From positions 35,588,001-35,652,000 of the forward strand of contig OZ287759.1 in NCBI GenBank assembly GCA_965649765.1: a stretch of 64,000 nucleotides of DNA, read 5' to 3'. The stretch is from Bispira polyomma. Lineage: Eukaryota. The notes under the pieces are model-generated. The model had not been told where the DNA came from, made no database searches, and was given only the letters and a program-made list of their open reading frames with translations. The translations under genes were made by a program, and so were the position numbers. Below, piece by piece: positions 3,999 through 62,000 of the stretch (positions within the stretch are counted from its first letter, which is position 1; each line of letters opens with the position of its first letter).

Positions 3999-4198
3999 NN
4001 NNNNNNNNNNNNNNNNNNNNNNNNNNNNNNNNNNNNNNNNNNNNNNNNNNNNNNNNNNNNNNNNNNNNNNNNNNNNNNNNNNNNNNNNNNNNNNNNNNNN
4101 NNNNNNNNNNNNNNNNNNNNNNNNNNNNNNNNNNNNNNNNNNNNNNNNNNNNNNNNNNNNNNNNNNNNNNNNNNNNNNNNNNNNNNNNNNNNNNNNNN
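3999..4198. other. assembly gap (200 N)
   Basis: Run of N in the sequence. Confidence 1.
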
Positions 4199-28540: not shown

Positions 28541-29619
28541 CTGGCGTCATTTCCTGTATTAAGTTACCATAACTGTCTTCATCATGTGTGATGTATAGAT
28601 TTATAATTGAATCTGTCACTGTGTATGTGGCGTGTGATGTTTTCATTAAATTAATTACCATGATATACTATAGCTATTCAAAGTATATTCCGATGCCATC
28701 TCAAAGTGCATTCTGTTAAAGTGCGTTTTTTTTGTTTTTTTTTGTCATTTGACCTTATTTTACTAGTAGCATTTTTATTTGACACCATATATTAGTCAAA
28801 CCTTTACAGCTTACATTTAAAGAGTTATAAAGATATGTAATTTGGTAAAAAAAAAACAGCAAAGAAAGTGTTATTGTGTATAAACTGTATCTAGAGTGGT
28901 TAATTAACCTTGTAAAATATCTATTGTAAATAAATCACAATTTAGGTTTAAAGTGTGTATACCTGATTGTATTTATAATTATAATATTAATAATAATGTT
29001 TATTCTCGTATATATGAAACATGATACAAAAAGAAGAAAAAAAACGCCAATTACAATTCAAACAGAAGGAAATATCTTGTAACAAAACATTATTATTATT
29101 CTGTACAGACACAAGAGATTATTTCATTTATCTCAGACAAAGTAAGCATAGTGCGTCATTAATTCTCTAATTGAATCTCTAAAATTATATTATTTTCTGC
29201 AATTTTTACATTTTTTTTTATTGAACTAAGGACTTATAATAGTGGATACATTAACTGAATTTAAATCAACAAAACCTAACTGATCCTTCCTGATGTTATA
29301 TTTTTAACAAAGTATATTTATATTATTGCATAAGCTATGACTACTACCATTTAATACTAAGAAGAAAACCAGATGAGACACATATATTATCACTTTTTAG
29401 AACACTGTAGAAATGTCTAAAAAAACGCCCATCTGCAACTTAACATCAGCAGGAAAGTCTTCACACATCAGCGGTAAAAACCCAGAGTGAGTAATCTGTT
29501 GTTTTATAATTTTTCTGGTTGTATATGTGTCACTGTAATAAATGAATACATAAATAATAGTATTCTGCAAGCCGATGTATTTTAATACTATCACAGTACA
29601 TATTTCGGAAGATGCTGAA

Positions 29620-29830
29620 TAAATAAACAGGGCCACGCGTGAACAAAGCCTCACAACAGGTTTTTTTTTTGCTCCGAAACCACTAAATGGTCTCTGACGC
29701 ACGCGACCGTTTTCATTGATACGAGGGTCTCCTCCAATTCCATTGGCGTAGAGAGATTTCGGCAATTTCCGGCCAGAATTCGTCTGACAAATAACAACGG
29801 AACCGGATGACATACCGGAAATTGTATGTT
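29620..29830 (+). promoter_or_regulatory. CpG-rich putative promoter and first exon of ABCB6-like gene A
   Basis: Local CpG enrichment in an AT-rich background, several ETS-type CGGA(A/T)/TTCCGG motifs, CCAAT/ATTGG, and a donor-like AAATT|GTATGT at 29823/29824. Confidence 0.5.
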
Positions 29831-32562
29831 GTTTCTGATGTAATAATTGGTATTTACTAACCGTTATGTGGGTTATAAACTTCTCGTTATTATTTTATAA
29901 TACTAGCTTGTAATGATAGCTATATAATTGACACTTCAGTATCACTTGATCCTAGTTCGTAATTATATATAAATATTTATATCTGTTGCTATTTCTACTA
30001 CTTTTACTACTACAAGTAAAGACGTCATAATGCATTTCCACTGTCCTAGTATTTTCCGGTGTTTTGATATGAAAATCTTCGACTAAAAATTCATCCTCGC
30101 CTGTTATTTTTATAGAGGAGTTTTTGAAGGGTATTTTTGGGACGACGCCCTAATTTGATGTGGCTTGTTTTCTTCATATCAATTGTAATTATTGAGATAA
30201 TAACCTGTAATAAGCTGCATGACTATACAACTAGGCTTATAGATCGTGCTATGGTTTTCAGATTAGAACACCGGGCCGCCTATTATCTCTTTATTATGAG
30301 TATGTTTCTATTTGTTTATAGTTTGTTTTTGGTTACATCTATCGTACTTAAACCCCAAAATCCACAAACATCTACATTGTGTTGTCTCACGACAATTTAC
30401 AGCCCTTTATAAACATACAGAGACTACACACATGTACACTGACAGAGTGGAGAGTGTGTGATCTGGGCTTCATTGTATTAATAACCAAGTTTTGTGAAGT
30501 GAATGTAATCATAGAGAGATTACAAGATCATTTGATAAGTGCCCTTGACAAATTATTAGCATTTTTTTGTGTTAAAACAATTAATCTCTTTGGTTGATAT
30601 AGTATTGTATAATATTCCTGAAATGTAAATGCTTCCAACAAACATATAGTAATCTGGGTGAAATTTCTTACGGTAACAGATGTATCTTAAATTAATCTCT
30701 TAGGGCCATTACACACTGCCGACAATACAACACGACGTGACAAAAACATTAGAAATAAGAAAATACATAAAGATTATATACACTGCCCCGACACAACACA
30801 ACACTACACTACAGAACACGGCAAGTTAACTTGGAGAAATCTCCAAAAAAGTAGTTTTACTGTGTATTTGTATATTGTTTTTGCAAAAATGACAGCAAAA
30901 ACGGTCTTGCAGTTGGCGGTCTAATAAGGCGACAGAAGAAAATTTTCCATATAATCGACTAAAACACTTTCGTAAAAGAGAATCAATTGGAGTTTTTTGG
31001 AAAGTTTTACATGTATAACTATATTAAGTTCTCTAATATTATGAAAACCCATAAAAAAAGCTTTATCACAACCAAAAAAAGTGAAAACAATACATCATAA
31101 TCACTAGTATGCTTTTACACTATCTAGTTTATAGCTAATTAATTCCAAAATTAACTCCAAGTTTAATTTAAATTTGTATTTATCTTTTAACGTGTATAGT
31201 TTTTAGTTTTTGAACGTGTAACATTTGGCCAACAGTGCAAATTAATTCCAGTATTTTTTTTTTTTTTTTTAATATGAGTTATTGCCAAAAAAAAAAAATC
31301 AGTTTTCAATTTAATTTTTAACTAACAGTACAGTAAATGTTAAACTGTAGATAAATGTTCTTCCAACTGAAATCTCAACTTATACAGTAAGTATTATAGA
31401 TAATAAAGAAAAACGATGAGAGAAATATCTTGTTTACTTTAAGTAATCTTCTTGTAACCCACTTAAGAGACCAAGGTTTAGAGTATCTTGTGATAAGAAC
31501 TTATTCATGATTTATATAAGCTATTTATAGGGTCTGACATCCTCTGTCTATTAAAAGTTTAATTACCTCTAGCCAAAATGTTTCATTCATTCAGTTCTCT
31601 CCTTATATGCCAATAGTATTACATAAGATGGACGATGTATATTTTTCCTGACATGTGTTATTAAATATTTCATACTGTAATTATATATATAACACGATAG
31701 GATTGAATTATACTGATTGATTAGTTATACGTTTGTAAATCAGCTGGGACAGGAAATGAATTACTGTTGCGGTGTCTAAGCGTAAAAAATGTCATATTGT
31801 TTTACAAATAAGGAATAATTTAAACTTGTCTCACTTCTGAACTGTACTGAAAAAACCTAGGATATTATATGTGTTTATACAAACTCAGTGGATTAAATAC
31901 AGGGTCTGTTCAACTTTAAATCTGCATTTCAAATGAGACATATACACTTAAACTATAAATACCAGTGAATGAGAGGTGGGAGAGGGGTGGGGGGACTGGG
32001 AAACCCCCCGGAAAACATCCTCGTCAGGGTTCTTACTAAAACCACAAGATACACAGAAGACACTACTATTTGGTCAATAGTATTCAGTTATTGCTCAATA
32101 ATTTTGTGACCTTGTTTTCCCCTATCCTAGAGTGTGTAGATATGTATATATATATATATAGATCGTCTGCCTGTCTTAGTTTATATCAAAATATAACAAA
32201 ACTGGGGATTGACTTGTACATTTGACACTACAAGTCAAGAAGAGGTTAGTGTGTGTCTGCTATGTAATCTGTAGATGTGGAAAATTTCACTAAATTTTTT
32301 ACCATTTTTCGAGAAGCTTAACCGGAATTTATCTTTTACTGGTGGCTGTATGTTTGGAAGTTTAAACATCAATACAAGTTTCAATGTAAAACATTAATCT
32401 TCACTACTTTGGCTAAAATTAGGCTTTGGCTCAGTGAAAATATCTATTTACACAGTAGATATCTGTGTGTGTGTGGGGGGGGGGGGGGGCTATTTACTGT
32501 ACACGCCTTTTTATTGCTGTTGTTATGTTGTTGTAGTATGATAAACAGCATCTGTGGTTGTC

Positions 32563-35500
32563 ATGGGTGCTAACAAACACCATAGCAACAGGAAGGGCAA
32601 ACAAGTAAGTGATGGAAGAAGTATAATAATAGATAAGATAATATATCAGACTTTTTTAGCGCTTATTTTCGTTGTAACGAATTCTAAGGCGCAAGGATAA
32701 GATAGATGGATTAATAATAAGTACATATACAATTAAATCAGTAAAAACAAAAATATCTAACAGTGTTATAGTACCAAGTCCAAAATATACTTATTTTAGT
32801 TACTTTAAAATAAGGAAACTTATAATGAACAGCTCCCACCTGTGCGATCCATGTAAGACAAGCCCGTGCAACATATCCTTTTTCATTTTGGAATTCATAT
32901 TTGTATCGTATGATATATCTTTGCAACACACTTTGATGCATCTTCTAAAGCGCAACAACCAAAAACAATCAATCAATCAGGTGTCCAACAATATAGCCTG
33001 GGTCGCCAGCAGAAGGCAATGACATGTTCACATATCGTCCAAGGATGTTATCCCACCAATAAGCCTCACTGCATTAGCAGTGGTGGAACCGGGGACCTTT
33101 TGATCAACAGACCAACTCCCTGACCACTAGGCCATTAGGAGACTCAAAGGTTATGTATTTACATTGGCCCTATGTCCCTTATCCACAGTCACATTACTGC
33201 CCTTCTGTATGTGCCTCAATTTTGGAATTTTTGCCTGACGATTTTTAGTCTTAGCGTACTGACATCCTGTATTTGAAGACGACATTGCTGTTGCAAAGAC
33301 TTTAATTTGAAGCGAAGGTTCAGTGAATCTCGTTCCAGGGTCCGTATTCTCGGAACGAAAGGGAACCCAAGCTTACCTCAAGGAAGGCAATGTGGAAGTC
33401 ATTGTATATATATATAAAAATAACCCATACGTTCGACTAGTTATTGTAATAGAGCTTTTAGTGCTAAATTCACATATAAAGACAGATTTCCGTTTTCTTT
33501 TACTCTGGTCAGAGGTATGGAGACTTTAGGAGATAAGATTAAATCCGTGCTTCAGTTTTTTTTTGCGGATGTTGCCACATGACTCTCTTCAACCTGTCTC
33601 TATCATTTTCTGCTATTGTTTTTATACAGAGTAGATTACACATTCCCCTGAAATTGCAAAACAAAATTGATGTACTATCATTTTTACCCAATTTTTTAAA
33701 GATTTTGAGCACTTTGGGGGTCAATATCTTTTTAGAAAAAACAAAAAATACAATCAACTCTCTCAAATCGGTGACATTTTTAGTTGAAAATTGTTCTTGT
33801 TAAATAAAAACACCCAGATGTAATAAACTGTCGTTGTATTTTTCTCCTGTCAGGATCTTTTTAACAATGGTACAAAACCATCTGAGAAAAAGGACAAAGC
33901 AGACATAGTGATTAAGGATGGAGACCAGTCTGACGCCACAAAGAAGAAGAAGTTGAAGTCCACCTGGAGTAACCTGGTCAAGTATGGTCGGGAGCTTTGG
34001 CCTTATGTCTGGCCATCGGGAGACCTCTACCTACAGGCCATTGTGGTGTTGGCTATCGTCATCATACTGGCTACCAGGCTAGTCAATGTACTGGTACCCG
34101 TTTTCTACAAAAAAATAGGTAGGGGACTTTTTTATATATTGGTACTACTCTCCTAATCCTAGGCATCATCGACACATACTGCCTGTATATTTATGACACC
34201 ACCACCCCAAAAACCATGTTTCATATTACTTGAAATAATAGCAACACTGAACAACTGTCATGTTGCCTGTAAGAGATACACGAATAAGAAGTAGTTCACA
34301 TAGCAAACAGAACACGATGTAGTGTTAAGCCTGGCGTTAAAATTACCAACATGATACATTTTTTGCCAACATTGGGCAAATCCATAAATGGTTAATCAAT
34401 AGTAGTTGTTTAAGTAAATAAGTCAGTAACTTTCCTAACCTGTTAAATATATGTTCATAACGATCATGTGTCAGATTAAAAACATTTGTTTTGTGTGTGG
34501 GGGGTGAAAATCAAAATTCCAGAATTGTGTATACATGGCTAAACTATCTGATATATCTTATAACACTGTAAATATCATAGCATATCACGACAGTTATGGC
34601 CATTTGTTGACAGTGTACCTTTAGTCTTTCTTAAGGCTTATCTTTGTCAGAAATACTCAATTTACGAAGTCAGAAATTTGTTTGTAACTGATTTGAAATA
34701 TAAATACATTTAATCTAACATCATACTCAGACAATGCTCCTGATCTTCAGTGGCCCAGAGATAAGGGAGTCAGTTCGACTCCTCTCAAAAGTACCACAAT
34801 ACATGCTGGGGGGATAACTGCTCTTTGATAAAAATCTCAACACACCATCGCCTACTGATGACCACCAATATGCTATGTTGTATTATTATCTCTTCTTGGA
34901 GAGAAAGCACATTGGAGGATATATACCACAATTTGGCACAATATCTAACTGCTCCAAAATCAATAAATAATATGCTAATAACGTCTATACTTCTGGCCAA
35001 GACATCAGAAGCTGTTATAGGAGTTACATATAATGCTGAATTCATTGTTTACATGTATTTTGAAATACATAGAATTCCGAAAACAACTAGGATTTATTTT
35101 CTGAGCAAATATGAGCCTTAACCAAGGCTAGTAGCAGGCTACTACTATATATGGATTGGTTGGAAGCAATTCACCCGTCTAAACTTAAGGGGCGTCAGAT
35201 GTACCTGAGTATATAGTGGCCATATCAACACGTTAGTGTATTTCAAGCTGTGCAACCCTGTCTTTTTTTAAAAAACTAACCTTGTTAGTACACTTCGTGT
35301 TGACCTTCGCCATGAATGTACATTATATTAAAAAATATTTAAAACCCTTAACATTGCAACCAATAATCATAAAAATCTGACTTACTGTATATTTTTGTAT
35401 ACAAAGATATCTAAAAACTGGCCACATATTTGAGCTCCTCGCCGAAAGCTCTATTAAAACGAATGGTCATATGTCTAGGTTATCAATATCAAATAATTAT

Positions 35501-38500
35501 ATAAACTAAAAATATGTTATACAAACTTTTATTCGAGTTTCAAGCAAGTAGTTGAAGAACTTTTGAGAAATGTACTCCCCCTATCTTTGTGCTTTGTGTC
35601 TAACAAGAACCCTCTCTATGACTTTCCCATTACTCACTTTACTACTATGCATGTGTGTAAGAGCCTCAACAGGTTTAATCCCCTACTTAACACCTACTAC
35701 CACCCCCACCCCCCCCCACCCCCTTACTCTTGGTAGATCCTTGACACACATATTTTTACTATTTTAAACAAGACCATGCATTCCTGTCAGCACCACTCAT
35801 TTGTTACTATTTTGTAGCTGCTTCATCCTGTTAAGGACATTGTTAAATTAGTGCCCACACTTATAACAAACCTTTTTCCAGGTAGTTGACAACTTTGAAG
35901 GATAATTTAATATTTGTGTAGATGGGAATTTTATAGTTAATTAATCTAAGACTTATTTAATCCAAGCTTGTTTCAATCAGACTATGTAAAGGATTGATTT
36001 TTAAAATCTATTTATTAACAATCTTGATTGGATTTTACTTTTATGTGTAAAAAGCAGACGCCCACAAATCTGATTTCCAGGAACAATCCCTGACCCAAAA
36101 CAATCCCCCGCAGAAAAACAACCCCACAAAAATAATCCCCCACAAAAAAAAAACAGCCCCTACAAGAAAAATATAACAATCACCCCACAAAAAAGCATTT
36201 CCCCCCAAAAAACAATCCCCCAAATACCCAAATAACGCCCCCCCCCCCCACCCCTCTAAAAAAAAAACAAACAATCTCCCCCCCCCCACACACAACAAAC
36301 AACCCCTTCAAAGAAACAATGCCGACCAAAAGCAATCACTGGGAACATTAATTGTTATTCTAAAAGGGCTGGATCCAGAACTTTCTCTATTGCTGTGTTG
36401 GAATAGTCTCCCTGTTGAGCTTAAACGATTTAAAAAAGTATAATGGCGCCATATAATTTTGGAAATACGAAAATATGAAAGCTGTAGTTAACAAAGTAAA
36501 ACAAGAAAAACAGCTCTTTAACCTTCCTGTGAGAGCTGAGTATGAGTTTAAGCATGAGTGTATTTTAAAAACACCAGGCCTGATACCCATACTTTGTTTT
36601 CCCAGTGAATAGCCTCACACCCGACGTACAACAGCCGATGTCCAGGAATTCTTTGCTCGATGAAAACGACACTCTAGCTTCCACCGAGTATGGCTTTCAC
36701 CAGGAGTCTGACATCACACCATCCACTGTGACGTCACTAATGAATGGCTACTATGTGCCGACATCATCAACCGGAAACACAAACGGCATCGAGTTCCGCT
36801 GGGATTACATCTTGGCCTTCATTGCCCTAAAATCTTTACATGGTAATATCTAATTTTAGGGCTTAGTTTAATAAATTTGATAAAAAAATTCAGCTTTTTT
36901 CAAAGATACTGTGGTATAAAGTGGTAAACAATTTTCACTAGGAATTAAATTTTAGCTATTGTATTTTGAATGCGTTGGGAGGGTCCACAGTTAGTTCCTA
37001 TTGCAAATAGAAACTTGTAGTATTGATATTTAAACTAAAAAATAGTCAATCTTGTGAAAATGATTTTCAACAATGATGTTTCCAGTTATCAAAATAGAAA
37101 ACCGGGGATAACTTGATGATCCACTATGCCAAAATAATTTCTTTGAATATAATTAAATGCTGATAAACCAATTTGTAGGAGATGTAAGGGAGAGATGGGA
37201 CATTGGCCAAGAATGGATCTATTTAATTTTGCAGCAGATCTGGGCAGATTTTTTAAAAACTTTTTAGTGCACAGGTATGCACTCAACCGAGTGCCCTTCT
37301 AGTTCAACATTTAATAATTAATAGAAAAGTTAGATTTTCAATATACACTGACATTATATTTATTAAAGACTTCTAAAAACTAGGATTTTTTAAAATTTAT
37401 TACATATTATATATGTTAATTGTTTTTTCATAATATAATCTGATGTGATCTCACGCTCTGAGAACTTTTAGTGCATGGTCATAGATAAAATTATTTATCA
37501 AATGATTGATTATAACTTTATCGTGTATTGATATACAGATGTATAACAAACTTAAGGTGGTGCATAAATTTATCTTCTGTTTCAGGCGGAAGTGGCTACC
37601 TCAACTGTCTGCGCAGCTTCCTGTGGATTAAGGTTGCACAGAACACTAAAAAAAAGATCACCCTCAAGCTGTTCAAACATCTACATCAGTAAGTAAAGAA
37701 AAAAAAATACTCCAAACAATTCTACTTAATCTATTTCACAGATTTTTGAAAATTTGCGTTGGTATTTACAGAGGTTCTTTTTTTTTAGTCTTATTTTAAA
37801 CAATGTGATTGGGTAAGCATAAGAAAATTCTAAGAATTGCATTCTTATCAATAATGTTTGTGGTAACACACTTGCCTCCCACCTCTGAGGTCATGAGTCC
37901 TACCATCAACCCTGGTGTGTCTATTTAGAACAAAAGGTGACAGCACATTTCTTGAAGGGTCAGTATCACATATAATCTTTTGTTCCCTTTATTGTTCCTT
38001 GTGTATGTATGTAGATGATTACAAAACCAAACCAGAGTTGTCTTTAAAAAAGTAGCAGGCGCACAGTATGAAATACACTACCGTTGATATGGCCACTATA
38101 TACTCAGACTCCCAAGCTGCGCCTGATATGACAATAAATGTTACATCAACCCTCGATTTGACCGGGTCGATCGCTTCCAACCAATCCATGAATGCCTTAC
38201 ATATTCTAAGATGGTGGGTGCCCATTTTTAGAATGAAAACAAATTCAGGCTGAACCTGTAAGGCCCATTCTATTTGCATATTCTCCTCTTTCACTTACAG
38301 CTTGTCTGTTCGGTGGCATGTGACCAGAAAGACTGGAGAAGTGGTGAGAGTGATGGACAGAGGGACACAGAGCATCACCCTCATACTCAAGTAAGGCACA
38401 CATATGTTTAACCCATTAGATCACAAGATAAAACTATTGCCGGAAACTTAAGGAAAATGTTTTCAGCCATCATAGGAGGAATCAGCATTGACAACATGAA

Positions 38501-41500
38501 CAATTATAAGCCATATAATTGTGGCATTTTGAAGACCTTTAATCTGTACACTTTTGTTACATCACAAAGTGCTGTTCAATATTGTATTATTTTTTTTTCC
38601 ACCCAGATGCTCGTCAATATTGTACACTTTTTCAGCCAAGTACTGTTCAATACTGTACTCTTTTTCAGCCAGGTATTGTTCAATATTGTGCCAGTGATTG
38701 CTGACATCATCATAGCCATAGTCTTCTTTGTGACAGTCTTCAATATCTGGATAGGACTCATTGTCTTTAGTACCATGACAGGCTATTTACGTAAGTAATT
38801 CATGCATGCTTATCATCATTTATTATTCATGTCATCCCTCAACAATCTCCCCAGAGGAAATCGTCTCTCCACCTCTGACCTTCAACCCCAGAATACCTGG
38901 ATCAAAATCATTTAATGCTACAGCACTGCTGGGGTCTCATTGTTTACATAGGGATACCCATCTGGCATCCCCTCCCTGTAGCCATAGTAACGATATAGTA
39001 AGGTTGGCACTTGACTTGTTTAAGGCTAGTCTGAGTACCATATCATTAGCAATCAAGATAGCAGTGATTGAGAAAGCATGGCAAATTTTAGAAATGTGGC
39101 TACTAAATGAATGATCAGAATCATAGTAGACACCTAGGTTTCTTACTTTATCAGCAGGTACAACATCAGTGCCAAGAATCGATTGTTACGAACTAGGCGT
39201 TGTTTTAGATAAGGGTCATTAGATAGTTTATCAATCCTGTGATACAACTTAAATACAGTATCAATATTATTGTTGCTTACCATTGTTTGTAGTTGTGACC
39301 ATCATTGGCAGTGAATTAAGGACCAAGTACAGGAGACTTATGAACGACACAGACAACCAGAGAAATGCTGCCTCTGTGGACTCCATCCTCAACTTTGAGA
39401 CTGTGAGTGACATTTAGACATAGTAAAATTAGTCCATGAATATATGAGGACACGAATTCAGACCTGGGGTTTTTAACCACCATTAATCAGACCATCTGAT
39501 ATGACCTAAGGTGTTTAAAGCTATATAAAGACAAAAGTAACTAAATAATTAAAACAGAGATTCTGAGTTTTGCATTTAAATTTTGCCTGAGGTTTTATAT
39601 CGCTTTCAACAGCTAACAAAATCATCAAGTGCTTCTGACCATTAGACCATACAGTGACTCTGAGAGTGCATACTTGAAGTCCATACTATATTTTGCCAAT
39701 AATGGGGATGCTTCCTTGAAGGTTATAGTGCTATAAGACAAATATATTTACTCAAACTTGAAACAAAAACAATAATCAAAAGTTAGCAGAAGCAGCTGTT
39801 TGATTAGAATAAGGTAACTGGTATGAAACTTGGTCAACTGGCAATTCTGTTTAATCCACTCTTATTTTACTGAGCCATTCGGAGGATATGAATGTTTGAT
39901 TTTGTGAATTACAGGTGAAGTACTACTCCGCTGAAGATTGGGAGGTGAAAAGATATGAAGAGAATGTGGACAAATACATTGTATGTAACATCTACAGTTT
40001 ACCAACTCTATAATGTTTATAATAATTGTATTCCTATTTTATTAGTACTAAATGAGCTATGATTGTTTTTTGTTTGATTTGCAAAATATATTTCAACAAT
40101 GTCCACAGTTTCTGAAAATGCAATATTCTTGCAGTGACAATAACCAATTGGGAATGCGCCTTTCCTACTTAATCTTGATAAACTGTCTGTTGTACTCTCT
40201 GCTTAGACTTGATTGTGTCACATATCTTGTTTCTACACAATAGGATGCAGAATGGACGGTCAATGCTACTGCCAACTTACTGAATGCTCTACAGAAGACT
40301 ATGATGATGCTGGGACTATTAGGAGGGTCAATGCTTTGTGCTTGGTAAGCTGGGTCTCAAACATTGTTTTATTAGATTAGCTATAGTTTGAGTTTAACAT
40401 CACTTTTTCAGGTGGAAAAGAAACCAGAATCGAGTTGTCGATCAAGGTTCTATCATGGTCAATGTTCTATCATGGTCATTATCACACCATTGCCTACTGA
40501 AGATAGACAAGCACAGTATGCTGTATTTGTTCACACTGATGACCTGATCAGAGTGAGTTGTGAGGTTGTACCAAAAGATGGTGTTATTTTCTTAATGTCC
40601 ACATGCCATTCTATATATGTAAATAAATTCGCATGCATGAAAATACATTTTCTACAGTGAAACCAGTCAAGTCTCTGAAGAACTATAATGTACTCATATA
40701 TATGACACCTCCTACAGGTACACCTATTCAGGGACCCTGACTGTGGGGGACTATGTGCTATTTGCTACTTATGTTGAACAGCTCTATGGTCCTTTGAACA
40801 TGTTTGGAGCATATTACAGGTGCAGTGCTATTTTTGGAACTAAAATATGTATTTTACTAAATTAATTTACTAAGTTCTCTGGTTATGTTTATCTCACAGA
40901 TTCCACCTTATTTTAATAATTACTTAAATATTCACATATCGATCTATTTTTGATAGTGATGGATATATTATTGTGGAAAATAATATGCAAAAGCATTTTC
41001 TGTTAATATTTAGCCTGTTAAGTTGTAGATATATCTACCCTGTTTTAGGGTATATTGATATTGATTTAACTGTGTATTAAACTAAATTAACTCCAAACAC
41101 CAAACATTTTAAATGTTGCTCTTTGAGCTCAAGGATACAAACATAAATTAACAATACTTTACATACCAAAGGGGCAGAATCTTTGGTATTTAGCCTGACT
41201 TACAGTATTTTTGAAGATATTGAGTATAATTACATTGATGACATGATTAGAATAATATGTGCTATTGTACCAAAATATATCTCTTTGTACATATCCATGT
41301 CTAGGGTGCTACAGCAGGCTTTTGTAGACATGGAGCACATGTTTGAGATGATAGAAGAGGAGCCAGATGTTCAGGACACACCTGAAGCCAGGCAGTTGTG
41401 TGTGGACAAAGGAGAGATCACCTTTGACAATGTGGGCTTTGAGTACATAGCTGGGTATGGTTTATACAGTAAAACCTCTATTGTCCAAACTTTTGTTTAT

Positions 41501-44500
41501 CCTGTAGAACCTCTATAATCCAAACTTCTGCTATCTCCTTCTCTTAGTGCACATTACTAGATATGATTTATAAGGCCAAAATTGCATTTTTTAAACTTTT
41601 GTTATCCCAATACTCTTGCAAATTTTAATTTTTCTATTGTTTTATACTAAAAACCCTCTCATATTGCTAAGATCACATGAAATACCTTCTGGTTTTAGGA
41701 AAAAGCTTAAAACCTATCTCGTTAAAATCGTATACCCCTTAGTATGGGCTATCTTTTTTGGACTTCTCTATTGGTTAACTGATTCTGCTTTAGAAGATGC
41801 CTTGCATAAATAAGGCTCATTAATAATCCAAAATACGGAACAAAATGATTGTACTAAAAACATGTCTTCCCACTGTATTTCCTTTAAAAGTTGATAAGTA
41901 ACACTGTTATTATTGAATAGTAAACACTCTTTTCTCTTACCTGTTTCAGAAAACCCATCATCCAAGGGATTAGTTTCACAGTGCCCCCAGGTAAAACCTA
42001 TGCCTTAGTGGGCCATTCTGGTGGAGGTAAGAGCACCATCATCAGGCTACTGTTCAGATTTTATGACATCACCTCGGGAACAATTAAACTGGATGGAGAA
42101 GATATATCTAAGGTACAGAGTATATTCTCTTATTTTCATTGTATAATATGCATAAATGTTTCCCTATCAGCATAGGGAACATAAATGTTTCCCTATCAGC
42201 ATTAGTGATACTAACTGGTACTAACTTATATATAATATAATATTTGTTATTTTTCACTTCTTAGTTACTATGTGTTATACTTTTAGTATATTGTGTTTGG
42301 GTAAATATCCAATCACTAAAGATATAACTATAATATGGTTGATATTTATAAACATTGTACACACATGCATATATTCGTCTTATGAAATAAATTTTGTGAA
42401 TTTTTGTAAAAATATATTGAAAAGTTTGTTGCTTTTCAAATAATATAGCAAAGTTTGCTACTTTACAGCTCTTATATTTTATGTATTATACTTCTTGTAT
42501 ATTGTGTGTTTAGGTAAAGATTAAATCACTGAGGCAACATATTGGAGTCGTCCCTCAGGATACAGTACTGTTTAATCAAGATATCAGGTATGAATCTATG
42601 TCATTAATTTGCATTACGTGTATATGTTGAATTTACAATTGAAATGGTATTAGTTAATTGAATACAGTAATCAACATGTCAAATAAACTGACAGTAATAC
42701 AAAACCCGGATTTATTTTTGTGAATAATAGTCCTACTCTATCAGAAGCAAAATACTAAGAGGATAACTTTGATAACAAATACACTCATCCACACTTGTCC
42801 ATGGTCTGAATTACATTGCTGAGTCTCACTAAGTATTGATATGCAGAAGAGTAGTAAATAAGTAGCAATTTTCAAATACCATCAGGGCCTGCGGTGACCT
42901 TGTAGTTAGACGTGTCTACTACATAATCACTGGTCTCTTACCAATGTATGTTCAAATCGTGTTTGTTCCTTCATGTGGGGATGTTATTCAAGTACTTGCC
43001 ATATGGTGATTGGTTAAAGTGCTTCAGCATTTGAATTTGAATTGGAATATTTAACATCCACTCTAGTACCTGTTCAGGTTATATTGGGACGAGTAGTTGG
43101 AAATGCTGGAGGAAACACTGCATACAGTTGATCAAGGTTCTGCACTGAAACCAGCGGCCCACATTAAGGAACTACCACCTTTCCCACATAGGCATCGACA
43201 GGATTCAAACTCACGCTGCCCAGAGGTGACAGACCAGTGATTGTGAAGCGCAATGCTTGCTAACCACTAGGCCACCGGGGCCCCCAAAGTGCTTCAGCAA
43301 TGGTATCTTGCATGATATATGCTGTTGGAAGCGATGTAAAACCCAACTGGTTCAAATTCAAATTCACAACATTATGTTATTGATATGCAAATACAAAATG
43401 GCCGCGCCCTACCCATTGAATTCTAGAATCATTCCTTGTTTTTCTTTTTTCAGATACAACATCAGGTATGGCAGAATAACAGCCAGTGACAAGGAGGTGG
43501 AAGAGGCAGCACAAGCAGCTGACATACATGAGAAGATACTGAGTCTGCATGACGGTGAGACTTTTTTACCATGCTTAATTGGTGGTCCATTTGCTTTTAT
43601 GATGGTTAAACTCCTTCCCCGTGATATTTTTGTTTGTATTAATGTATTGATACATACAGACAAGACAAGAAACTTACTCTACACGATGGTGAGACTCCTT
43701 TTCTCATGCTTTATTGGTGGTCTATTTGCTTTATTGTACTAATACAGATGTGGATTGACAAACGTATATTATCCTTATAATTATTATTGAAACATTTTTT
43801 TTTCCAAAAGGAATAGTCCCTTTTAAACATATGGCCTGAGTTGTCATCGGTAGGCAATGGCGTGTTAAACATCTTGCCGAAGGATGTTTTCTAAACAATG
43901 ATCCTAGTGAGTCAAACCAGACCAACTTCTACAACCAGGAGTCGAACTGGGAACCTTCAGAATCTAACTTTAGTTTAACTAAAATATGCAATGTCCAGTT
44001 TAAAAAGGAATCTCTTCTTATTTATCCACTCTGGTTAGACAGCTTCAAATGATGATATACCACGATAGTTGAGACAAGATCAGAGCAGTTTTCGTAGTAT
44101 ATTATTCTAGAGTGGTCTTTCTGGCCTGGCGTTTAGAGTGTCCGACTTTGGATCTTAGTGATCTCAATCCTCGCTAGTATGCTTCTTCAGGGAGCTTAGA
44201 CTAAACAATTGGTTGACAAGTGGAAGAACCCAGGCTAGGGTAATAATGTCAAAGCGCATAAAATAAAAGTGTACTATATCAAATGAATAAATAATATTAT
44301 TATTATATTATTCATGATATTTGTCATTGATCAAAGATCAAAAAGAAATAGTTCTCATGATCATGAATGTGTGCACAATGCCTTAAAATATTTTAGGTTA
44401 CGACAGTCGTGTTGGAGAAAGAGGTCTGAAGCTGAGTGGTGGTGAGAAGCAAAGAATTGCTATTGCCAGGACCATACTGAAGTCACCAGAGATAGTCCTC

Positions 44501-46411
44501 TTAGATGAGGTAGGTATCATGATTTCATATGTCTAGTTGCACTTTTTATATAAACAGGTAGAAAAAAGGCTGTGAGTTGTTTTCTTTTTGTTTTACTTTC
44601 AAAATGTCAACGCATAACATTATCATATCGGCTTTGTTTTGCTGGCACAACAATGCCACGCATATGCCTCTCCTTGGAAGCCTGGTAAAATATAAATAAA
44701 TTCCAATATATACTTTATACCCAGTAAGAATATAAACACTTTTTTTCATTTTAAAGAATACAATGAATAACACTAATCCCCTCATGTGTTATAAATTGTG
44801 TGAATGTTAAATAAAATATAGGTTACTCTTAAGCACAACAATATAGCCAAACTATACTTTTCTATCCAAGGCCACTTCTGCCCTGGACACAAGGACAGAG
44901 AGGAATATCCAGAGAAGTCTGAGACAGATGTGTGAGAACAAGACCACACTGATAGTAGCTCACAGACTCTCCACTGTCACACATGCTGATAAGATACTGG
45001 TCATAGAAGATGGCAGGATTGTAGAGGAAGGACAGTAGGTGTTACACGAATATTAGGGAGTTTTTTGTTTTCATTTTGATAAGTGCTCCGCCATCTTTGA
45101 AAAGGGTGCCGCTATCTCAGAAATAATATGTAAGGCCTTCATGGCGTGGTGGGAAGCAATTGACCTGTCCCAACTGAAAGGTGACAAATTTGCCTGAGTA
45201 TATAGTTGCCATATCAACGTTAATGTATTTCACACTAGGCACCTGTGTCTTTTGTAAAAGGCAACTCTAGATATGTTACATTATTTCATAGTAGTTGAGC
45301 TGTTAAGCTTATTATGTGTTTTGAAAGATGTATTAACCTCGGGTATTTTTTACAGATTACTTCTTTATGTTGATCTATTTGTTAGTTTGTTATATATATA
45401 TACTTATGATTTTGTCACTATGATTTTCCTTGTTACTTCATGTATTTTCTTTCTTATATTTTCTTTAGTCACCATGATCTTATCCAAATCCCTGATGGAC
45501 ACTATGCAGAGATGTGGCAGGAACAGCTACAAAGTGGTGAGATTGAAGAGGAGGACCTTGAAGCTGTTCCACCAGCATTTAGCTTGGATACTGACTCTTT
45601 GGTGGAGAACACTGACATGCTACACTACAGACCATTGGGGAGCAGACGAGACACTACTACAGAAACTAGAAATACTGGTAATAATAATGACATGGATACT
45701 CCACAAACTTATAGTGTTCAAATACTGCCTACTGAAGCAGTGGATCATGCTGGATACCCACATGATCCAGAAGAAGAGGAAATGCTGCAAGAGTTGAAGG
45801 ACAGTGTTGACATGTCAGATGACGATGATGAAGACGAAATAGACATACTCGTTCAATCAGAAACTGGCGGTGCAGGGACACATGCCTTCAATGTTGCCAG
45901 TGAGAATGCTAGGTTGATAGCATCTTGTCGGGACTATAAGCCTCCTGCCAAAGGGCCACCACTTTACCACAGAATGGTATCTAACCCTGACTCCTCCTCC
46001 ATACCAGCATCCAGGTCATTCACAAAAAGTCACAACATTGCCTCGCCACTGTTCATACGCCAACGATCACACACTCAAGGCTCTCAGAACAGCAGGAGAC
46101 ACCTGTTCAACAGGCAGGCATCCTGTCCGAGTCATAAGTGTCGGAAGAAGGATATCAATGAGAGGATGAGTATCAAGGAGAAAGAGCGCCAGATAGAGCG
46201 CGAGCGGGCCAGCGCAATCCTGACTGAAAGCCAGATGAACCTGATGCCAGAGGATTGTGCCTCTGTTGACATAGTGCCCCCGGATCACCAGGATGAACAC
46301 GATCCACTGCTGGCTAGTTTTACAAGTAGAGACTTTCAAGATAGAAACAAGAATGAGGATGCTATGTTAATTGCAGACAAGCAAAGACACCATACTGCAG
46401 ATCTAGTGTAA
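32563..46411 (+). CDS. ABCB6: ABCB6/HMT-1-like ABC half-transporter, paralog A (~981 aa, 17 coding exons)
   Basis: GT-AG, phase-consistent exons: 32563-32604 ([14 protein letters not shown], least certain), 33854-34118, 36606-36842, 37586-37688, 38301-38390, 38669-38790, 39293-39402, 39915-39980, 40244-40344, 40718-40819, 41305-41454, 41950-42112, 42514-42587, 43454-43554, 44397-44509, 44871-45034, 45469-46411; total 2946 nt. Motifs: [30 protein letters not shown], Walker [11 protein letters not shown]-loop VPQD, signature LSGGEKQR, Walker B VLLDEATSALD, H-loop AHRLST. Colinear with the human ABCB6 core as recalled. Confidence 0.92.
36085..36310. repeat. C/A-rich low-complexity tract in an intron
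   Basis: Alternating A and C runs (AAAACAATCCCCC-like). Confidence 0.7.
38850..39180 (-). mobile_element. L2/CR1 LINE fragment in an ABCB6-A intron
   Basis: Reverse strand encodes [21 protein letters not shown], homologous to DKVRNLGMLFDS in ORF 49195-49920. Confidence 0.7.
43030..43285 (-). mobile_element. tRNA-derived SINE, young family A (copy 4), nested in an older + strand SINE (~42884-43365)
   Basis: Target-site duplication AAAGTGCTTCAGCA at 43016-43029 and 43286-43299. Confidence 0.9.
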
Positions 46412-48780: not shown

Positions 48781-50382
48781 AGCCTCTGCTTCCTTTCAGC
48801 ATGTTTTTATCGGCCGGTTTTTTCTTCATTACACAATACTACCAATTAAGTGTTTCCTTTCAGCATATCTGCATCAGATCAGATCAGACGTCGCCCGACG
48901 TTGGTTTGGCCAACAGATTTTATTTGTCAGGGTGGGAAAAAATCGAGAGGACTGTCAGATTTAACAACAAAACGAATACAAATCCCCTGTCATAGGTATA
49001 GCTTTCATCCAATTTGTACTCGTCGGATGGCATGAAAAAGCTTATTTTATTGTGATGACTGTGCTTTTCCCCCCACCAAAATCAGTTAAGGAACTGCTCA
49101 GATATTTAAGTTTATAGATGGGTAAACCATTTAACTTCCTCTTCTACTGGCAACAAATAAACTCAAGCTGAACCCTGATAAGACCGAGTTTATTTTGTTT
49201 GCCTCCAAGTTGCAACAGGAAAAACTGTCCAGCTGTTTCCCAGTTGATATTCTTGGCAGCAGGCTTTTCCCAGCTGACAAAGTACGCAACCTGGGCATGT
49301 TGTTTGACTCTGAATTCTCCTTCTTCAACCATGTTGCATCCGTGTGTAGATCATGTTTTGTTGGCCTCCGTGATTTCAGGCGAATTAGGCGTTATCTAAC
49401 CAAATCCACTGCAATCACTGTTGCCAACACCTTGGTCAGCAGCAGGCTTGATTACTGCAACTCTCTGTTCCGTTCCCTATCTTGTAGTGACCTCAAACGT
49501 CTTCAGAACGTTCAACACTCATTGGCTCGCATCGTGGCCAAAACTTCTAAATTTTTGCACATTACTCCTGTACTTAAGTCACTCTACTGGCTCCCAATAA
49601 AATATTGTGTTGCTTTCAAAATTGCAACAATTATATACAAATTTCTAAATTCTGGATCACCCACCTATTTCAGCCCCCATCTATCCAAATATACATGCTC
49701 AGTCAGGACTAGGCGCAGTTACCCTGATGAGTTATATCTTAACATTCCCACTTTCGACTCTCGCATCCACAAATCCAAAGTACATTTCAATCATTGCCTT
49801 GCTCATGATGGCCCCTTCATATGGAACAGCCTGCCTGATCATGTTCACTTGGCTCAAACATTCTCCTCTTTTAGGAGTAAACTGAAGGCCTACCTTTTCG
49901 AACAGGCCTTTCCACCTTAGCCATCGCAACCATCCCGGTAGTCTCTCTGGTTATGACCACCATCCGTCCCCCATTTCTGATTTTTTTTTTTGATTAATGC
50001 TTAGGTTAGTTTCGCCTTAGCATTTGTTGTACAAAGATTAAGTGCTATAAAAGTACGATTAGATTAGATTAGATTACTGTGAATGGCACGTCGCAGCAAT
50101 GGCATAATGACGTCGGTTTTGCAGCTACGTCACATAAGGAAGTAAAAATGGGTACCCTTATTTAATTGTAAATATCTCAGCTGTTACTGAACGGTTTTGG
50201 ATGCAATAAAAATCACAGTAATCACAATCAAATGGGCTTTCTCATGCCTTTTTCTAAGTCAACATGTGACGAATTTTGAGTGCATATCGGATGAAAGAAA
50301 GCACAACGTCGGCTGACATCGTATCGGATCGGAGACCTTCAAATCGGCAGACGTCGGAATGTGCTGAAAGCAAGCGTAGGCT
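48781..50382. mobile_element. foldback MITE (possibly PIF/Harbinger-type) interrupted by an L2 LINE
   Basis: Terminal inverted repeats AGCCTCTGCTTCCTTTCAGCA and TGCTGAAAGCAAGCGTAGGCT. Inner arms also inverted: GGCATGAAAAAGC..ATTGTGATGACTGTG and CACAGTAATCACAAT..GCTTTCTCATGCC. Confidence 0.65.
49150..50075 (+). mobile_element. 5'-truncated L2/CR1-clade LINE (ORF2 C-terminal part, 3' UTR, (GATTA)n tail)
   Basis: NKLKLNPDKTE...VRNLG..FDS...SRLDYCNSL...HITPVLKSLYWLPI...IWNSLP...FRSKLKAYLF*; ends GATTAGATTAGATTAGATTA. Confidence 0.92.
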
Positions 50383-52597: not shown

Positions 52598-52671
52598 GTG
52601 ACACAGAAATCACTTAGACAAAATCTAGGAATGATTCCCCAACATACAGGACTGTTCAATGAAGATATAAG
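52598..52671 (+). pseudogene. orphan ABCB6-like Q-loop exon
   Basis: TTTTCCAG|...|GTACAG, 74 nt, the same length and phases as exon 42514-42587. Encodes VTQKSLRQNLGMIPQHTGLFNEDIR versus [25 protein letters not shown]. Confidence 0.8.
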
Positions 52672-52873
52672 GTACAGATTGTTTGATTTAACATTTTCTC
52701 GAAGGAGCTTGTCACCACCAATTTTAAAACAACCACTACCACATTACAGCACCAAGGTCAATGGACTCGGTTAATGCAGCCCAAAATAAGACTTTACTTA
52801 AGGTGGCTTACACCAAGCTATGCTCACACCCGTGCATTTGCTGTGAGAAAGTTGTGAGAAGCCGATCGCTATA

Positions 52874-59000: not shown

Positions 59001-62000
59001 ACTGTAACTTTTGTTTTTGTGCCTATGAAATCAGCTGTTCCATTTTGGGAATTATACCCCTTGTAACTTGCCCAGATAAGTTTCACAGACATAAACAGAC
59101 AATTACTAGCACGGAAGTAGTATTGATGTGATACGGAAATACCCGGAAATTGTTCGGAAACAGACGAAAGGATTATTCCACGTTGGTGAGGCGACTGCAG
59201 AAGGTTTGGGATAGAAGCTATACTGAATCTTTGCTGATGGGAAGTTATAGATAGGGTTTCCAGAGCTACAAGGCTATATATATATAACTACTCTAACCAT
59301 CTCTCGATGCCGTCATAGTGTAAACCTGACATAAAGTTGTCTTAATGTTTTTTAGGGGCATCAGTGGTGCAGTACTAACACATTCTCCCCCACACCTATT
59401 GTCTCGGTTTATATCTCAGCTGGGGCTTCAACTCGGAAAGTTGGCAGCTCTTTGCCAATGGTTGCTGATTTAAAAGTGTAGAATCTTGACCAATTAACGG
59501 TAATATACACAGGTTTTCCTCTAGAATTAAAACCTTCTGCTATTATATGACCTATACAATGTGTTGAAAGGCACGTTAAACTTAAATCAAATCAAGGTTT
59601 TCCAGTATGGTTTTCATAACCTTTTTAACTCTCTTCATACCATCATAGTGTGAACCTGACATTAGTTCCCAAGGGTTTTTCCAGTATGATAATAATACAC
59701 ATTGTCAACCTCCCTATACTTACTGATATGATCTCTCCAGACCCTGCTTGATAAGAATAACAAGAAGAGTGGTCCAGATAAGAAGAAGAAGCAGTTCTCA
59801 TGGACTGGGTTCTGCAGTAACTTCCGTGCCATCTGGTGCTGTCTCTGGCCAAAAGGGAAGCCGTTGCTACAGCTACGCTTCTTTATCTCCCTACTTCTGA
59901 TCGTTGCCAACAGATGTCTCAATGTGTTCTTACCAATACTATACAAGGAAATAGGTGAGTTAGGTGTAAACAGTTGAATGTGTAAGTTCAGCATAGCCTG
60001 TATTATCCAAAATTATAGCCTCCTCCAAAACATTTGATTTTATCAGCACACTTTCACTCTCCCAAATATACATTTTTCTGGGGGTTTTGAAAAGACCTAA
60101 ATTGCCTTGTCTATTAATTTGATAATTCTTTTATTATCCAAACAAAAATCATGCTCTCCTAATATGTTCAGATAATAGAGGTTCTACTTTATTAACAAGT
60201 GCTACATATAAAGGTCACTATAGACAAGTGGTCACTTAATAGAGTCTTAAATGCAGTCAAGATGGCCTAAATAACTGGAATTGTTGTTGTAAATGTTGTT
60301 TGTACATAGTAATAATTTTCAACCTGATGTGTGTACATGTATTGTATTTCTTGTAATTATAATGTATATCATGTCACTTTGTCATCATGTATCTCCTGAT
60401 CGTGTACTTATTTTTTATTATTATTATTACATGACACTTTGGTGGCCATAAATTGGAGAAGGTTTAATACCTCGCATTGAGAAAGAGGTCTCAATATGTT
60501 CTTACCAATTCTTTACAAGGCAATAGGTGAAGCTAAGTAAACACTACATAAACTTGTATGTGGCCATGATTCTTAGAATTTTTTTAGTTTCAGCCAATCA
60601 TACCATTTAAAACAATCTTTTTAGCCAATCAAATTGGTGGAGACAAATAAAAATTAACGATTAGAATCTTTGTGAATACCAGCTCGAACGTCTTGGCTTA
60701 GCCCTTTAATTCTTTTGATAATACCACCCCTTAATAATTCTTAAAGTTTTGTCTCCACTATTTCGATTGCCCACAAATATTGTTTTAAAAAATCTAATTG
60801 GCTAAGACTAAGAAAATTCGTAGAATAGCATTCTGTTTGAGTTATAATACGGCTCCTGGTATGCCACGTGTATGTTGTACTGGTATGTTCAAGCTGTGTG
60901 TACATCTGAACAATACTTCAGTTGCCTTGGTGGCCTAGTGGTTAGAGTGTCGGACTTTGGATCTGAGTGATCTGAGAGCCAGGGTTCGATCCTTGCTGCA
61001 GGCCTGGAGATTTTACCCTTGAACAAGGTACTTTACACAAAGTTGTCTCTCTCTCTACCTAAGTGTATAAATGGGTACCTTACTGCTAATGGATATTAGT
61101 CTTTTTCCGCCATTTGTGGCAGTGCGGCTAGTATGCTTCCTGAGGGAGCTGAGACTAAACAATTGGTTGACAAGTGAAAGAACCCAGGCTCAATAGAGGT
61201 GATATCAGACTATTATAAACCTACACACACATTTACATTTTACTTGTATGCACACTGAACAATCTCCATATGTGTACACTGTAGTTGACTGCCTCACACC
61301 ACACAACCTCACACGGCCTGGCTCAGGTACTACCGATGATGTCATCACACCACAACACCCAGCTGATGTCACCACACAAATCAGTAGCAATCTGAGTGAC
61401 CTTGACCAGGGTGGTGGTAGTGGTGGTGGTAGTACTACAGAGACAGGAGTGGAGTTCTGCTGGCAATATATACTGCTCATGATACTGTGTAAATTACTGA
61501 ATGGTATGTACATTTGACATGATCTGTACATATAGATATAACATAGACATAACATAGATATAACATAGATATAACATAGACGTAGCATAGATATAACATA
61601 GATATAACATAGACGTAACATAGACATAACATAGATATAACATAGACATAACATAGATATAACATAGATATAACATAGACGTAACATAGACATAACATAG
61701 ACATAACATAGATATAACATAGACATAACATAGATATAACATAGATATAACATAGACGTAACATAGATATAACATAGATATAACATAGACGTAACATAGA
61801 TATAACATAGATATAACATAGACATAACATAGACATAACATAGATATAACATAGACATAACATAGACATAACATAGACATAACATAGATATAACATAGAT
61901 ATAACATAGACATACCATAGATATAACATAGACGTAACATAGACATAACATAGATATAACATAGACATAACATAGATATAACATATACGTAACATAGACA

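Follow-up and report, generated by a model that had tools for sequence, protein, structure and literature searches.

A 64,000-nucleotide stretch of the Bispira polyomma genome (1.04 Gb; GCA_965649765.1, contig OZ287759.1, also C12, positions 35588001–35652000; hereafter the window) carries on its plus strand, at 32563–46411, an ABCB6-type gene of 17 exons, whose 2946 nt (981 codons) form one uninterrupted frame. We consider it rather probable that this gene encodes an intact and selectively maintained half-size ATP-binding cassette (ABC) exporter descended from ABCB6/HMT-1, which lacks the membrane domain TMD0 and whose location and activity would be set by motifs in a long C-terminal tail. 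TMD0, or NTE, defines ABCB6/HMT-1, consists of five helices and directs the protein to endolysosomal or endosomal membranes. Because this domain is absent, we file the window gene as an ABCB6-derived variant and not as a canonical member of the family.

Gene model

The window is AT-rich and has the character of intron-rich animal DNA. Exon limits were set from blocks collinear with the canonical paralogue of B. polyomma and with a related species (ENA ERZ22147071, contig ctg30787l, 875 kb), from canonical splice sites and from frame continuity. The joined 17-exon translation served for frame and hydropathy checks, and homology searches were run exon by exon. In the related species all exons of the orthologue are collinear with those of the window gene. 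Reads of this sequence occur in three DNA-like runs, each of which contains 95–96% of the words in a 10-kb piece that consists mostly of intron. Since only such DNA-like runs hold the window sequence, it is conservation that supports the splice junctions. The model has canonical Walker A, Q-loop, signature, Walker B, D-loop and H-loop motifs. The coordinates of all features are collected in Table 1.

Absence of TMD0

The first-pass annotation had described a 14-codon first exon and a short hydrophilic stretch leading directly into the core transmembrane domain (TMD), downstream of a CpG-rich promoter near 29.7 kb and with no TMD0 exons in between. These coordinates are borne out by our analysis, the CpG-rich stretch being a candidate promoter. 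The start codon, the donor of exon 1 and the acceptor of exon 2 lie at 32563, 32605 and 33854, and the observed/expected ratio of CpG peaks at 1.2–1.3 in the CpG-rich stretch (29.5–30.25 kb). As to TMD0, the profile, tblastn, tblastx and N-terminal hydropathy tests agree.

The alternative would be that TMD0 is retained, in exons that escape recognition because they have diverged too much or lie too far upstream, or in a second form of transcript without exon 1. TMD0 is poorly conserved between phyla, the phase-0 acceptor of exon 2 could take another upstream exon, and the 5′ end of the gene is known from DNA alone, all of which would allow for this. However, a whole-genome search with the Pfam profile MTABC_N (PF16185) at E values up to 10 gave no TMD0 match near the window gene, yet it caught every TMD0 exon of the canonical ABCB6 paralogue, recovering a full set at this one site only (C12:14737491–14743788). 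Exon 2 of the window gene matches only positions 205–244 or 215–244 of the profile, which are its last 30–40 positions and correspond to the linker. When the TMD0 exons of the paralogue were used as tblastn queries, noise alone was obtained over the window and a further 40 kb upstream, that is, over 74 kb upstream of the gene, and no TMD0-like sequence was found in the 21 kb upstream of exon 2 in the related species. The TMD0 exons of the paralogue all lie within 9 kb of its linker exon. A tblastx comparison of the upstream regions of the two species showed no conserved coding block, though exon 2 stands out clearly. Together with the conservation of exon 1 described below, these results make a retained TMD0 very unlikely. 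Two blocks at 23.45 and 23.77 kb that are weakly conserved in the related species contain indels and look non-coding.

The predicted N-terminus is hydrophilic, with a highest 19-residue Kyte–Doolittle mean of −0.79 within the first 60 residues. Its first 64 residues include 16 Lys or Arg, 8 Asp or Glu and no hydrophobic segment, and by their composition they do not resemble a mitochondrial presequence. Exon 1 is conserved in the related species as MGTKRHLSNKEVKQ followed by the donor gtgagt, collinear and 1.1 kb before exon 2, and the similarity spans from the acceptor (ttgtag, ~30 nt ahead of the ATG) to the donor (CAA/GTAAGT in B. polyomma). An in-frame stop lies between acceptor and ATG in both species (TGA and TAA at 32539–32544 in B. 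polyomma, TGA in the related species), so that an exon spliced upstream of exon 1 cannot extend the frame. Exon 2 follows a cag acceptor, starts in phase 0 and lacks an in-frame ATG. Judged by this conservation, the short 14-codon first exon is real, and TMD0 is absent from the window gene as far as it can be read from the genome. In a fifth species an exon 2 orthologue is present; its contig offers 885 bp for the search for exon 1, which gave no match there. N-myristoylation of the Met–Gly start was considered and dropped, as the residue four places after the Gly is His in both species. A His at this place is unlike the usual N-myristoylation pattern.

The paralogue has an intron before its linker exon at profile position ~207, about where the homology of the window gene begins. 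This shared boundary fits a truncation of the window gene at an exon boundary.

The C-terminal tail

The last exon had been reported to continue for about 290 residues beyond the usual ABCB6 end, and we measured 294 codons before the TAA at 46409–46411. At the local base composition, the 313-codon open frame of this exon has a chance probability of ~1e-10. A phmmer search with the last exon against 1.84e9 representative proteins returned three relatives (P0001, P0002 and P0003), all of them fragments of last-exon open reading frames (ORFs), to which the tail is 57, 39 and 45% identical by phmmer and 56, 34 and 36% in the alignment. Comparison of the tail with that of the related species gave proportions of nonsynonymous and synonymous differences of 0.28 (pN) and 0.72 (pS) and a dN/dS of ~0.15, with dS saturated. 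This ratio shows the tail to be conserved under purifying selection. Since the canonical paralogue has just 21 residues beyond MWLQQQ and no long tail, the tail goes with the TMD0-less form.

AlphaFold2, run on the last exon with an alignment, gave a predicted local distance difference test (pLDDT) value below 50 for 200 of the 313 residues, so that most of the tail is predicted to be disordered. The only confidently folded tail element is a charged helix, which aligns with the tail of a tandem sister gene (gene C, see below). No domain was found in the tail by Pfam, and ESM Atlas returned only sub-threshold matches (0.78), to disordered tails of receptors and scaffold proteins.

The first-pass annotation had pointed to two acidic dileucine sorting signals (EHDPLL and EDAMLI) and a PDZ-like DLV terminus, and their positions were confirmed. 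The comparison with relatives gives a mixed picture of these motifs. EHDPLL is kept in three of the four orthologues. In P0002 the site reads DPLC, accompanied by a shifted EHDELI, and in gene C it reads DVLC; the aligned core is D-x-L-[LC]-x-S (invariant in D-x-L-x-x-S), with LC in place of LL in two lineages. EDAMLI occurs in this genome alone. A third match to [DE]xxxL[LI], ENARLI, has the counterpart DDVKLI in gene C and in the gene C orthologue of the related species. The PDZ-like terminus did not hold up: DLV is common to a single relative, and the six tails end in DLV, DLV, SVV, FNV, MPV and MSA, with a terminal Val in five of six and no single PDZ class.

Instead of sorting, the tail could mainly serve regulation or assembly, with phosphorylation of RxxSxP and RQRSxTQG and possibly 14-3-3 binding, a helix that tunes ATPase activity, dimer or partners, and incidental dileucines. 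We regard this as possible but doubtful. Within the tail, conservation among the four orthologues is highest in the two RxxSxP sites, RQRSxTQG, ERER and the helix, and the C-terminal 43 residues of C. elegans HMT-1 are required for self-interaction and function (PMC6077975). One dileucine match that is not conserved and another that reads LC in two lineages point the same way. On the other side, the RxxSxP sites are absent from the gene C tail, and the three [DE]xxxL[LI] matches exceed those in shuffled sequences (mean 0.43, P(≥3) = 0.008), with two of them partly conserved. A complex prediction with two copies of the tail helix (score 0.02) counts neither for nor against self-binding and supports neither side. 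Moreover, regulation and sorting are not mutually exclusive. The acidic serine cluster occurs in all tails scanned and is also kept, as SDEEEI, in the gene C orthologue.

ABCB6 ancestry and substrate cavity

Per-exon phmmer searches against PDB aligned exon 2 with residues 231–289 of human ABCB6 (linker and first transmembrane helix, TM1) and exons 7, 9 and 10 with residues 418–463, 487–517 and 524–551. For all four exons ABCB6 was the best match, above ABCB7, Atm1 and Atm3; with exon 7, human ABCB6 scored 39–40 bits and ABCB7 22.6 bits. The ABCB6 identity given in the first-pass annotation is thus upheld in each tested exon, and by these scores the window gene is derived from ABCB6 and not from ABCB7/Atm1. 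An ABCB7 orthologue, sought for rooting, was not picked up in the B. polyomma genome by exon queries.

In the structure of human ABCB6 with bound Cd(II):glutathione, contacts are made by R435, R439, N498, Q501, N545, T549 and R552, and W546 forms a cap (PMC11143254). Six of the seven contacts are kept in the window gene (R435, R439, N498, Q501, N545 and R552), while T549 is replaced by Ala and the cap is Met, as in NaAtm1 (M317). The canonical paralogue keeps all seven contacts and has Phe as cap. The predicted cavity of the window gene is therefore compatible with the transport of thiol conjugates, though specificity cannot be read from the residues.

Paralogue, tandem sister gene and relatives

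The canonical ABCB6/HMT-1 paralogue (C12:14737491–14798400) lies on the same chromosome, 21 Mb from the window gene. It comprises four MTABC_N exons, i.e. a full TMD0, and after the nucleotide-binding domain (NBD) its short C-terminus reads ..MYSDMWLQQQ plus 21 residues. Some of its introns are very long (~25 kb and ~12 kb), and two partial copies of the exon 10 equivalent lie directly downstream of the real exon.

Gene C, a tandem ABCB6-type sister on the same strand, extends from 59741 to ~91.3 kb in window coordinates, ~27 kb past the window end. TMD0 was not detected in gene C by the genome-wide MTABC_N search or by tblastn with the TMD0 exons of the paralogue, and a candidate for its first exon at 59.0 kb proved to be noise. 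The ~380-residue tail encoded by its last exon shows homology to the tail of the window gene (hhalign probability 94%, E = 1e-7). Derived residues that are absent from the paralogue and from human ABCB6 occur in both tandem genes, namely QKTMM in TM5, the Met cap and Ala549. In the cavity of gene C, R439K, N498M and N545L are changed in addition to T549A.

On the contig of the related species, ~44 kb downstream of the window-gene orthologue, lies an orthologue of the gene C tail with 68% identity. As both orthologues sit on one contig, the pair predates the species split, and as the design recurs in gene C together with a homologous tail, the two genes form a small subfamily. By the exon and tail comparisons, the TMD0-less, long-tailed design is common to the window gene, gene C and several other species.

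The tandem arrangement on one strand, kept in two species, also raises the possibility that the products of the window gene and gene C form an obligate heterodimer, or that the TMD0-less protein pairs with canonical ABCB6 and uses or modulates its TMD0 targeting. The divergence of gene C at R439, N498 and N545 would be an asymmetry of the kind expected of a heterodimer, and HMT-1 without its NTE still binds and mistargets full-length HMT-1 (PMC6077975). Nevertheless, Walker A and B, signature and H-loop are consensus in both genes, so that neither has a degenerate site. We consider either form of pairing unlikely.

Two repeats were observed in gene C. A 123-bp tandem array with at least 5.1 copies at 98% identity lies directly before the real exon 4 (~63956–64628) and straddles the window end; its unit contains the splice acceptor tttgtag and the first codons of exon 4, GGGGYINCLRGLLW. 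An intron of gene C holds a 1.85-kb satellite (61532–63376) of 11-, 33- and 44-bp units of the ATAGATATAAC type with 91% matches, and this satellite accounts for three overlapping minus-strand ORFs of 620–720 codons and a strong AT skew at the window end.

Features of the locus

Table 1. Position of the exons, tail motifs and further features in window coordinates, with the evidence for each
Feature	Position	Strand	Evidence or remark
CpG-rich stretch, candidate promoter or non-coding leader	29500–30250		CpG observed/expected 1.18–1.34, flanks ~0.4–0.6
Exon 1 (first coding)	32534–32604	+	~29 nt 5′ untranslated region after ttgtag acceptor, ATG 32563, 14 codons
Exon 2 (hydrophilic lysine-rich stretch, ABCB6 linker KSTW..., TM1)	33854–34118	+	68% identical in related species
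Exon 3 (TM1–TM2 loop with ~50-residue insertion including one NDT sequon, start of TM2)	36606–36842	+	59% identical in related species
Exon 4 (TM2)	37586–37688	+	collinear in related species
Exon 5 (RWH..TGEV..DRGT, intracellular loop 1)	38301–38390	+	collinear in related species
Exon 6 (TM3)	38669–38790	+	frame continuity
Exon 7 (TM4)	39293–39402	+	R435 and R439 equivalents both kept
Exon 8	39915–39980	+	collinear in related species
Exon 9 (TM5)	40244–40344	+	N498 and Q501 equivalents kept; QKTMM common to gene C
Exon 10 (TM6)	40718–40819	+	N545 and R552 kept; cap W546 to Met; T549 to Ala
Exon 11 (end of TMD, start of NBD)	41305–41454	+	collinear in related species
Exon 12 (Walker A)	41950–42112	+	Pfam ABC_tran PF00005, E = 1.3e-11
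Exon 13 (Q-loop)	42514–42587	+	collinear in related species
Exon 14	43454–43554	+	collinear in related species
Exon 15 (signature LSGGEKQR, Walker B LLDE)	44397–44509	+	collinear in related species
Exon 16 (D-loop, H-loop AHRLST)	44871–45034	+	collinear in related species
Exon 17 (last 19 residues of NBD; 294-residue tail 45527–46408; TAA 46409–46411)	45469–46411	+	open frame
Acidic serine cluster S[DE]3+..EI.I.V	45815–45853	+	in five of five tails scanned (four orthologues and gene C)
ENARLI, third [DE]xxxL[LI] match	45902–45919	+	kept in related species; not listed in the first-pass annotation
RMVSNP (RxxSxP)	45971–45988	+	RM[VI]S.P in four of four orthologues
RQRSHTQG, basophilic Ser/Thr site block	46058–46081	+	RQRSxTQG conserved among orthologues
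RQASCP, RxxSxP pattern of 14-3-3 mode-I site	46112–46129	+	RQ.SCP in four of four orthologues
Charged helix, sole confidently folded tail element	46127–46240	+	AlphaFold2 pLDDT 81–95, query residues 220–257
EHDPLL, acidic dileucine match	46295–46312	+	EQDPLL in P0001, ENDQLL in P0003
EDAMLI	46355–46372	+	unique to this genome
C-terminal DLV	46400–46408	+	DLV in closest relative (the related species) alone
Gene C linker/TM1 exon	59741–59954	+	phase-0 acceptor and ATAG/GT donor at same position as in window gene

Within the window gene, a 33-bp tandem repeat (38614–38689, 2.3 copies, 88% matches) duplicates the beginning of exon 6, namely its acceptor and initial 11 codons. The repeat creates in-frame candidate acceptors at 38636 and 38603; if used, these would lengthen the beginning of TM3 by 11 or 22 residues.

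Between the tandem genes, at 52607–52672, an isolated fragment resembles the Q-loop exon (68% identity over 22 residues); it may have been left by another duplication or by a transposed piece. An open frame of ~240 codons at 49152–49911 has no Pfam match; it is 57–67% similar to part of an RVT_1 ORF directly after the window-gene orthologue of the related species and is therefore probably a retroelement remnant. On the minus strand at 14233–14919, a leucine-rich-repeat ORF (LRR_4 2e-15, LRR_8 7e-13) marks a neighbouring gene or an exon upstream, and 200 N at 3999–4198 represent an assembly gap or masking.

Proposed mechanism and its weighing

A laboratory TMD0-less "core-ABCB6" folds, dimerises and hydrolyses ATP, but remains at the plasma membrane (PMC4410673), and C. 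elegans HMT-1 without its NTE is stranded at the plasma membrane, non-functional and dominant-negative (PMC6077975). Since ABCB6 in human cells and HMT-1 in C. elegans stay there once TMD0 is gone, it is reasonable to suppose that the tail might supply a new sorting device, and it is for the same reason that we ascribe the setting of location and activity to the tail motifs. In our proposal, an ABCB6 copy would have been truncated at the intron before the linker exon and then have acquired a new first exon, while the last exon would have been lengthened before the tandem duplication. The protein would dimerise and use ATP to export glutathione- or thiol-linked substrates, and its location and activity would be governed by the acidic CK2-type cluster, the dileucine-like signals and the basophilic RxxSxP phosphosites of the tail.

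The individual parts of this proposal differ in strength. That sorting is the main role of the tail is a tentative idea, to which we give clearly less than even weight, similar to that of a mainly regulatory or assembly role. We are about as doubtful of its fullest form, in which TMD0 was discarded, sorting and phospho-switch motifs of the tail took over moving the pump off the plasma membrane, and the tandem pair might heterodimerise. The targeting-module swap put forward in the first-pass annotation remains a plausible hypothesis. Nothing that we found points to metal or pigment granules, which it had suggested as the destination.

Several points weigh against the proposed mechanism. We infer the substrate class from conserved cavity residues alone, and likewise exon use, the 5′ end and expression of the window gene from conservation alone. 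An isoform may skip exon 1 and use unrecognised upstream coding exons. Among the putative sorting motifs one dileucine is confined to this species, the best one reads LC in two lineages and the PDZ-like end is inconsistent. The acidic serine cluster, the two RxxSxP sites, RQRSxTQG and the helix are better conserved and would fit phospho-regulation as well as sorting. Finally, the grouping of the window gene with gene C is suggested by shared derived characters, even though the NBD of the window gene is closer to that of the canonical paralogue than to that of gene C.

If the swap took place as proposed, the locus would be a natural and conserved exchange of targeting modules in an ABC transporter. 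A natural, conserved and duplicated TMD0-less ABCB6 whose long tail bears motifs shows that evolution performed the laboratory deletion and retained its product. This offers a system for asking what TMD0 really contributes, whether cytosolic linear motifs can replace a membrane targeting domain, and how cavity variation, such as the Met cap and the contact losses of gene C, relates to the substrates of metal and thiol detoxification. It also calls for caution in annotation, because similarity would probably give such genes the plain label "ABCB6".

Comparison with known systems

With the ABCB6/HMT-1 proteins of human, C. elegans and S. pombe, the window gene shares the core TMD and NBD, the linker before TM1, the ATPase motifs and the cavity residues R435, R439, N498, Q501, N545 and R552. 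It differs from them in having no TMD0/NTE, in the exchanges of W546 to Met and T549 to Ala, in the ~50-residue insertion in the TM1–TM2 loop and in its 294-residue tail, where ABCB6/HMT-1 has ~20–25 residues.

Other ABC transporters also carry C-terminal signals: CFTR and ABCA1 are full-size members with short, defined PDZ-binding C-termini. Like these, the tail of the window gene extends the C-terminus into the cytosol, bears short linear motifs and ends in a hydrophobic residue, but it is long and predicted to be disordered, and its last three residues conform to no single PDZ class.

ABCB7, Atm1 and NaAtm1 resemble the window gene as half-transporters without TMD0 and through the glutathione-binding arginine cluster and the Met cap (NaAtm1 M317). 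However, ABCB7/Atm1 score lower in each tested exon, and the window gene has a Lys/Asp-rich N-terminus and the ABCB6-specific linker.

In domain content, the window gene equals core-ABCB6 and HMT-1 without its NTE (PMC4410673, PMC6077975). Those proteins are artificial, whereas the window gene is natural and conserved, and to the same domains it adds a tail and a first exon of its own.

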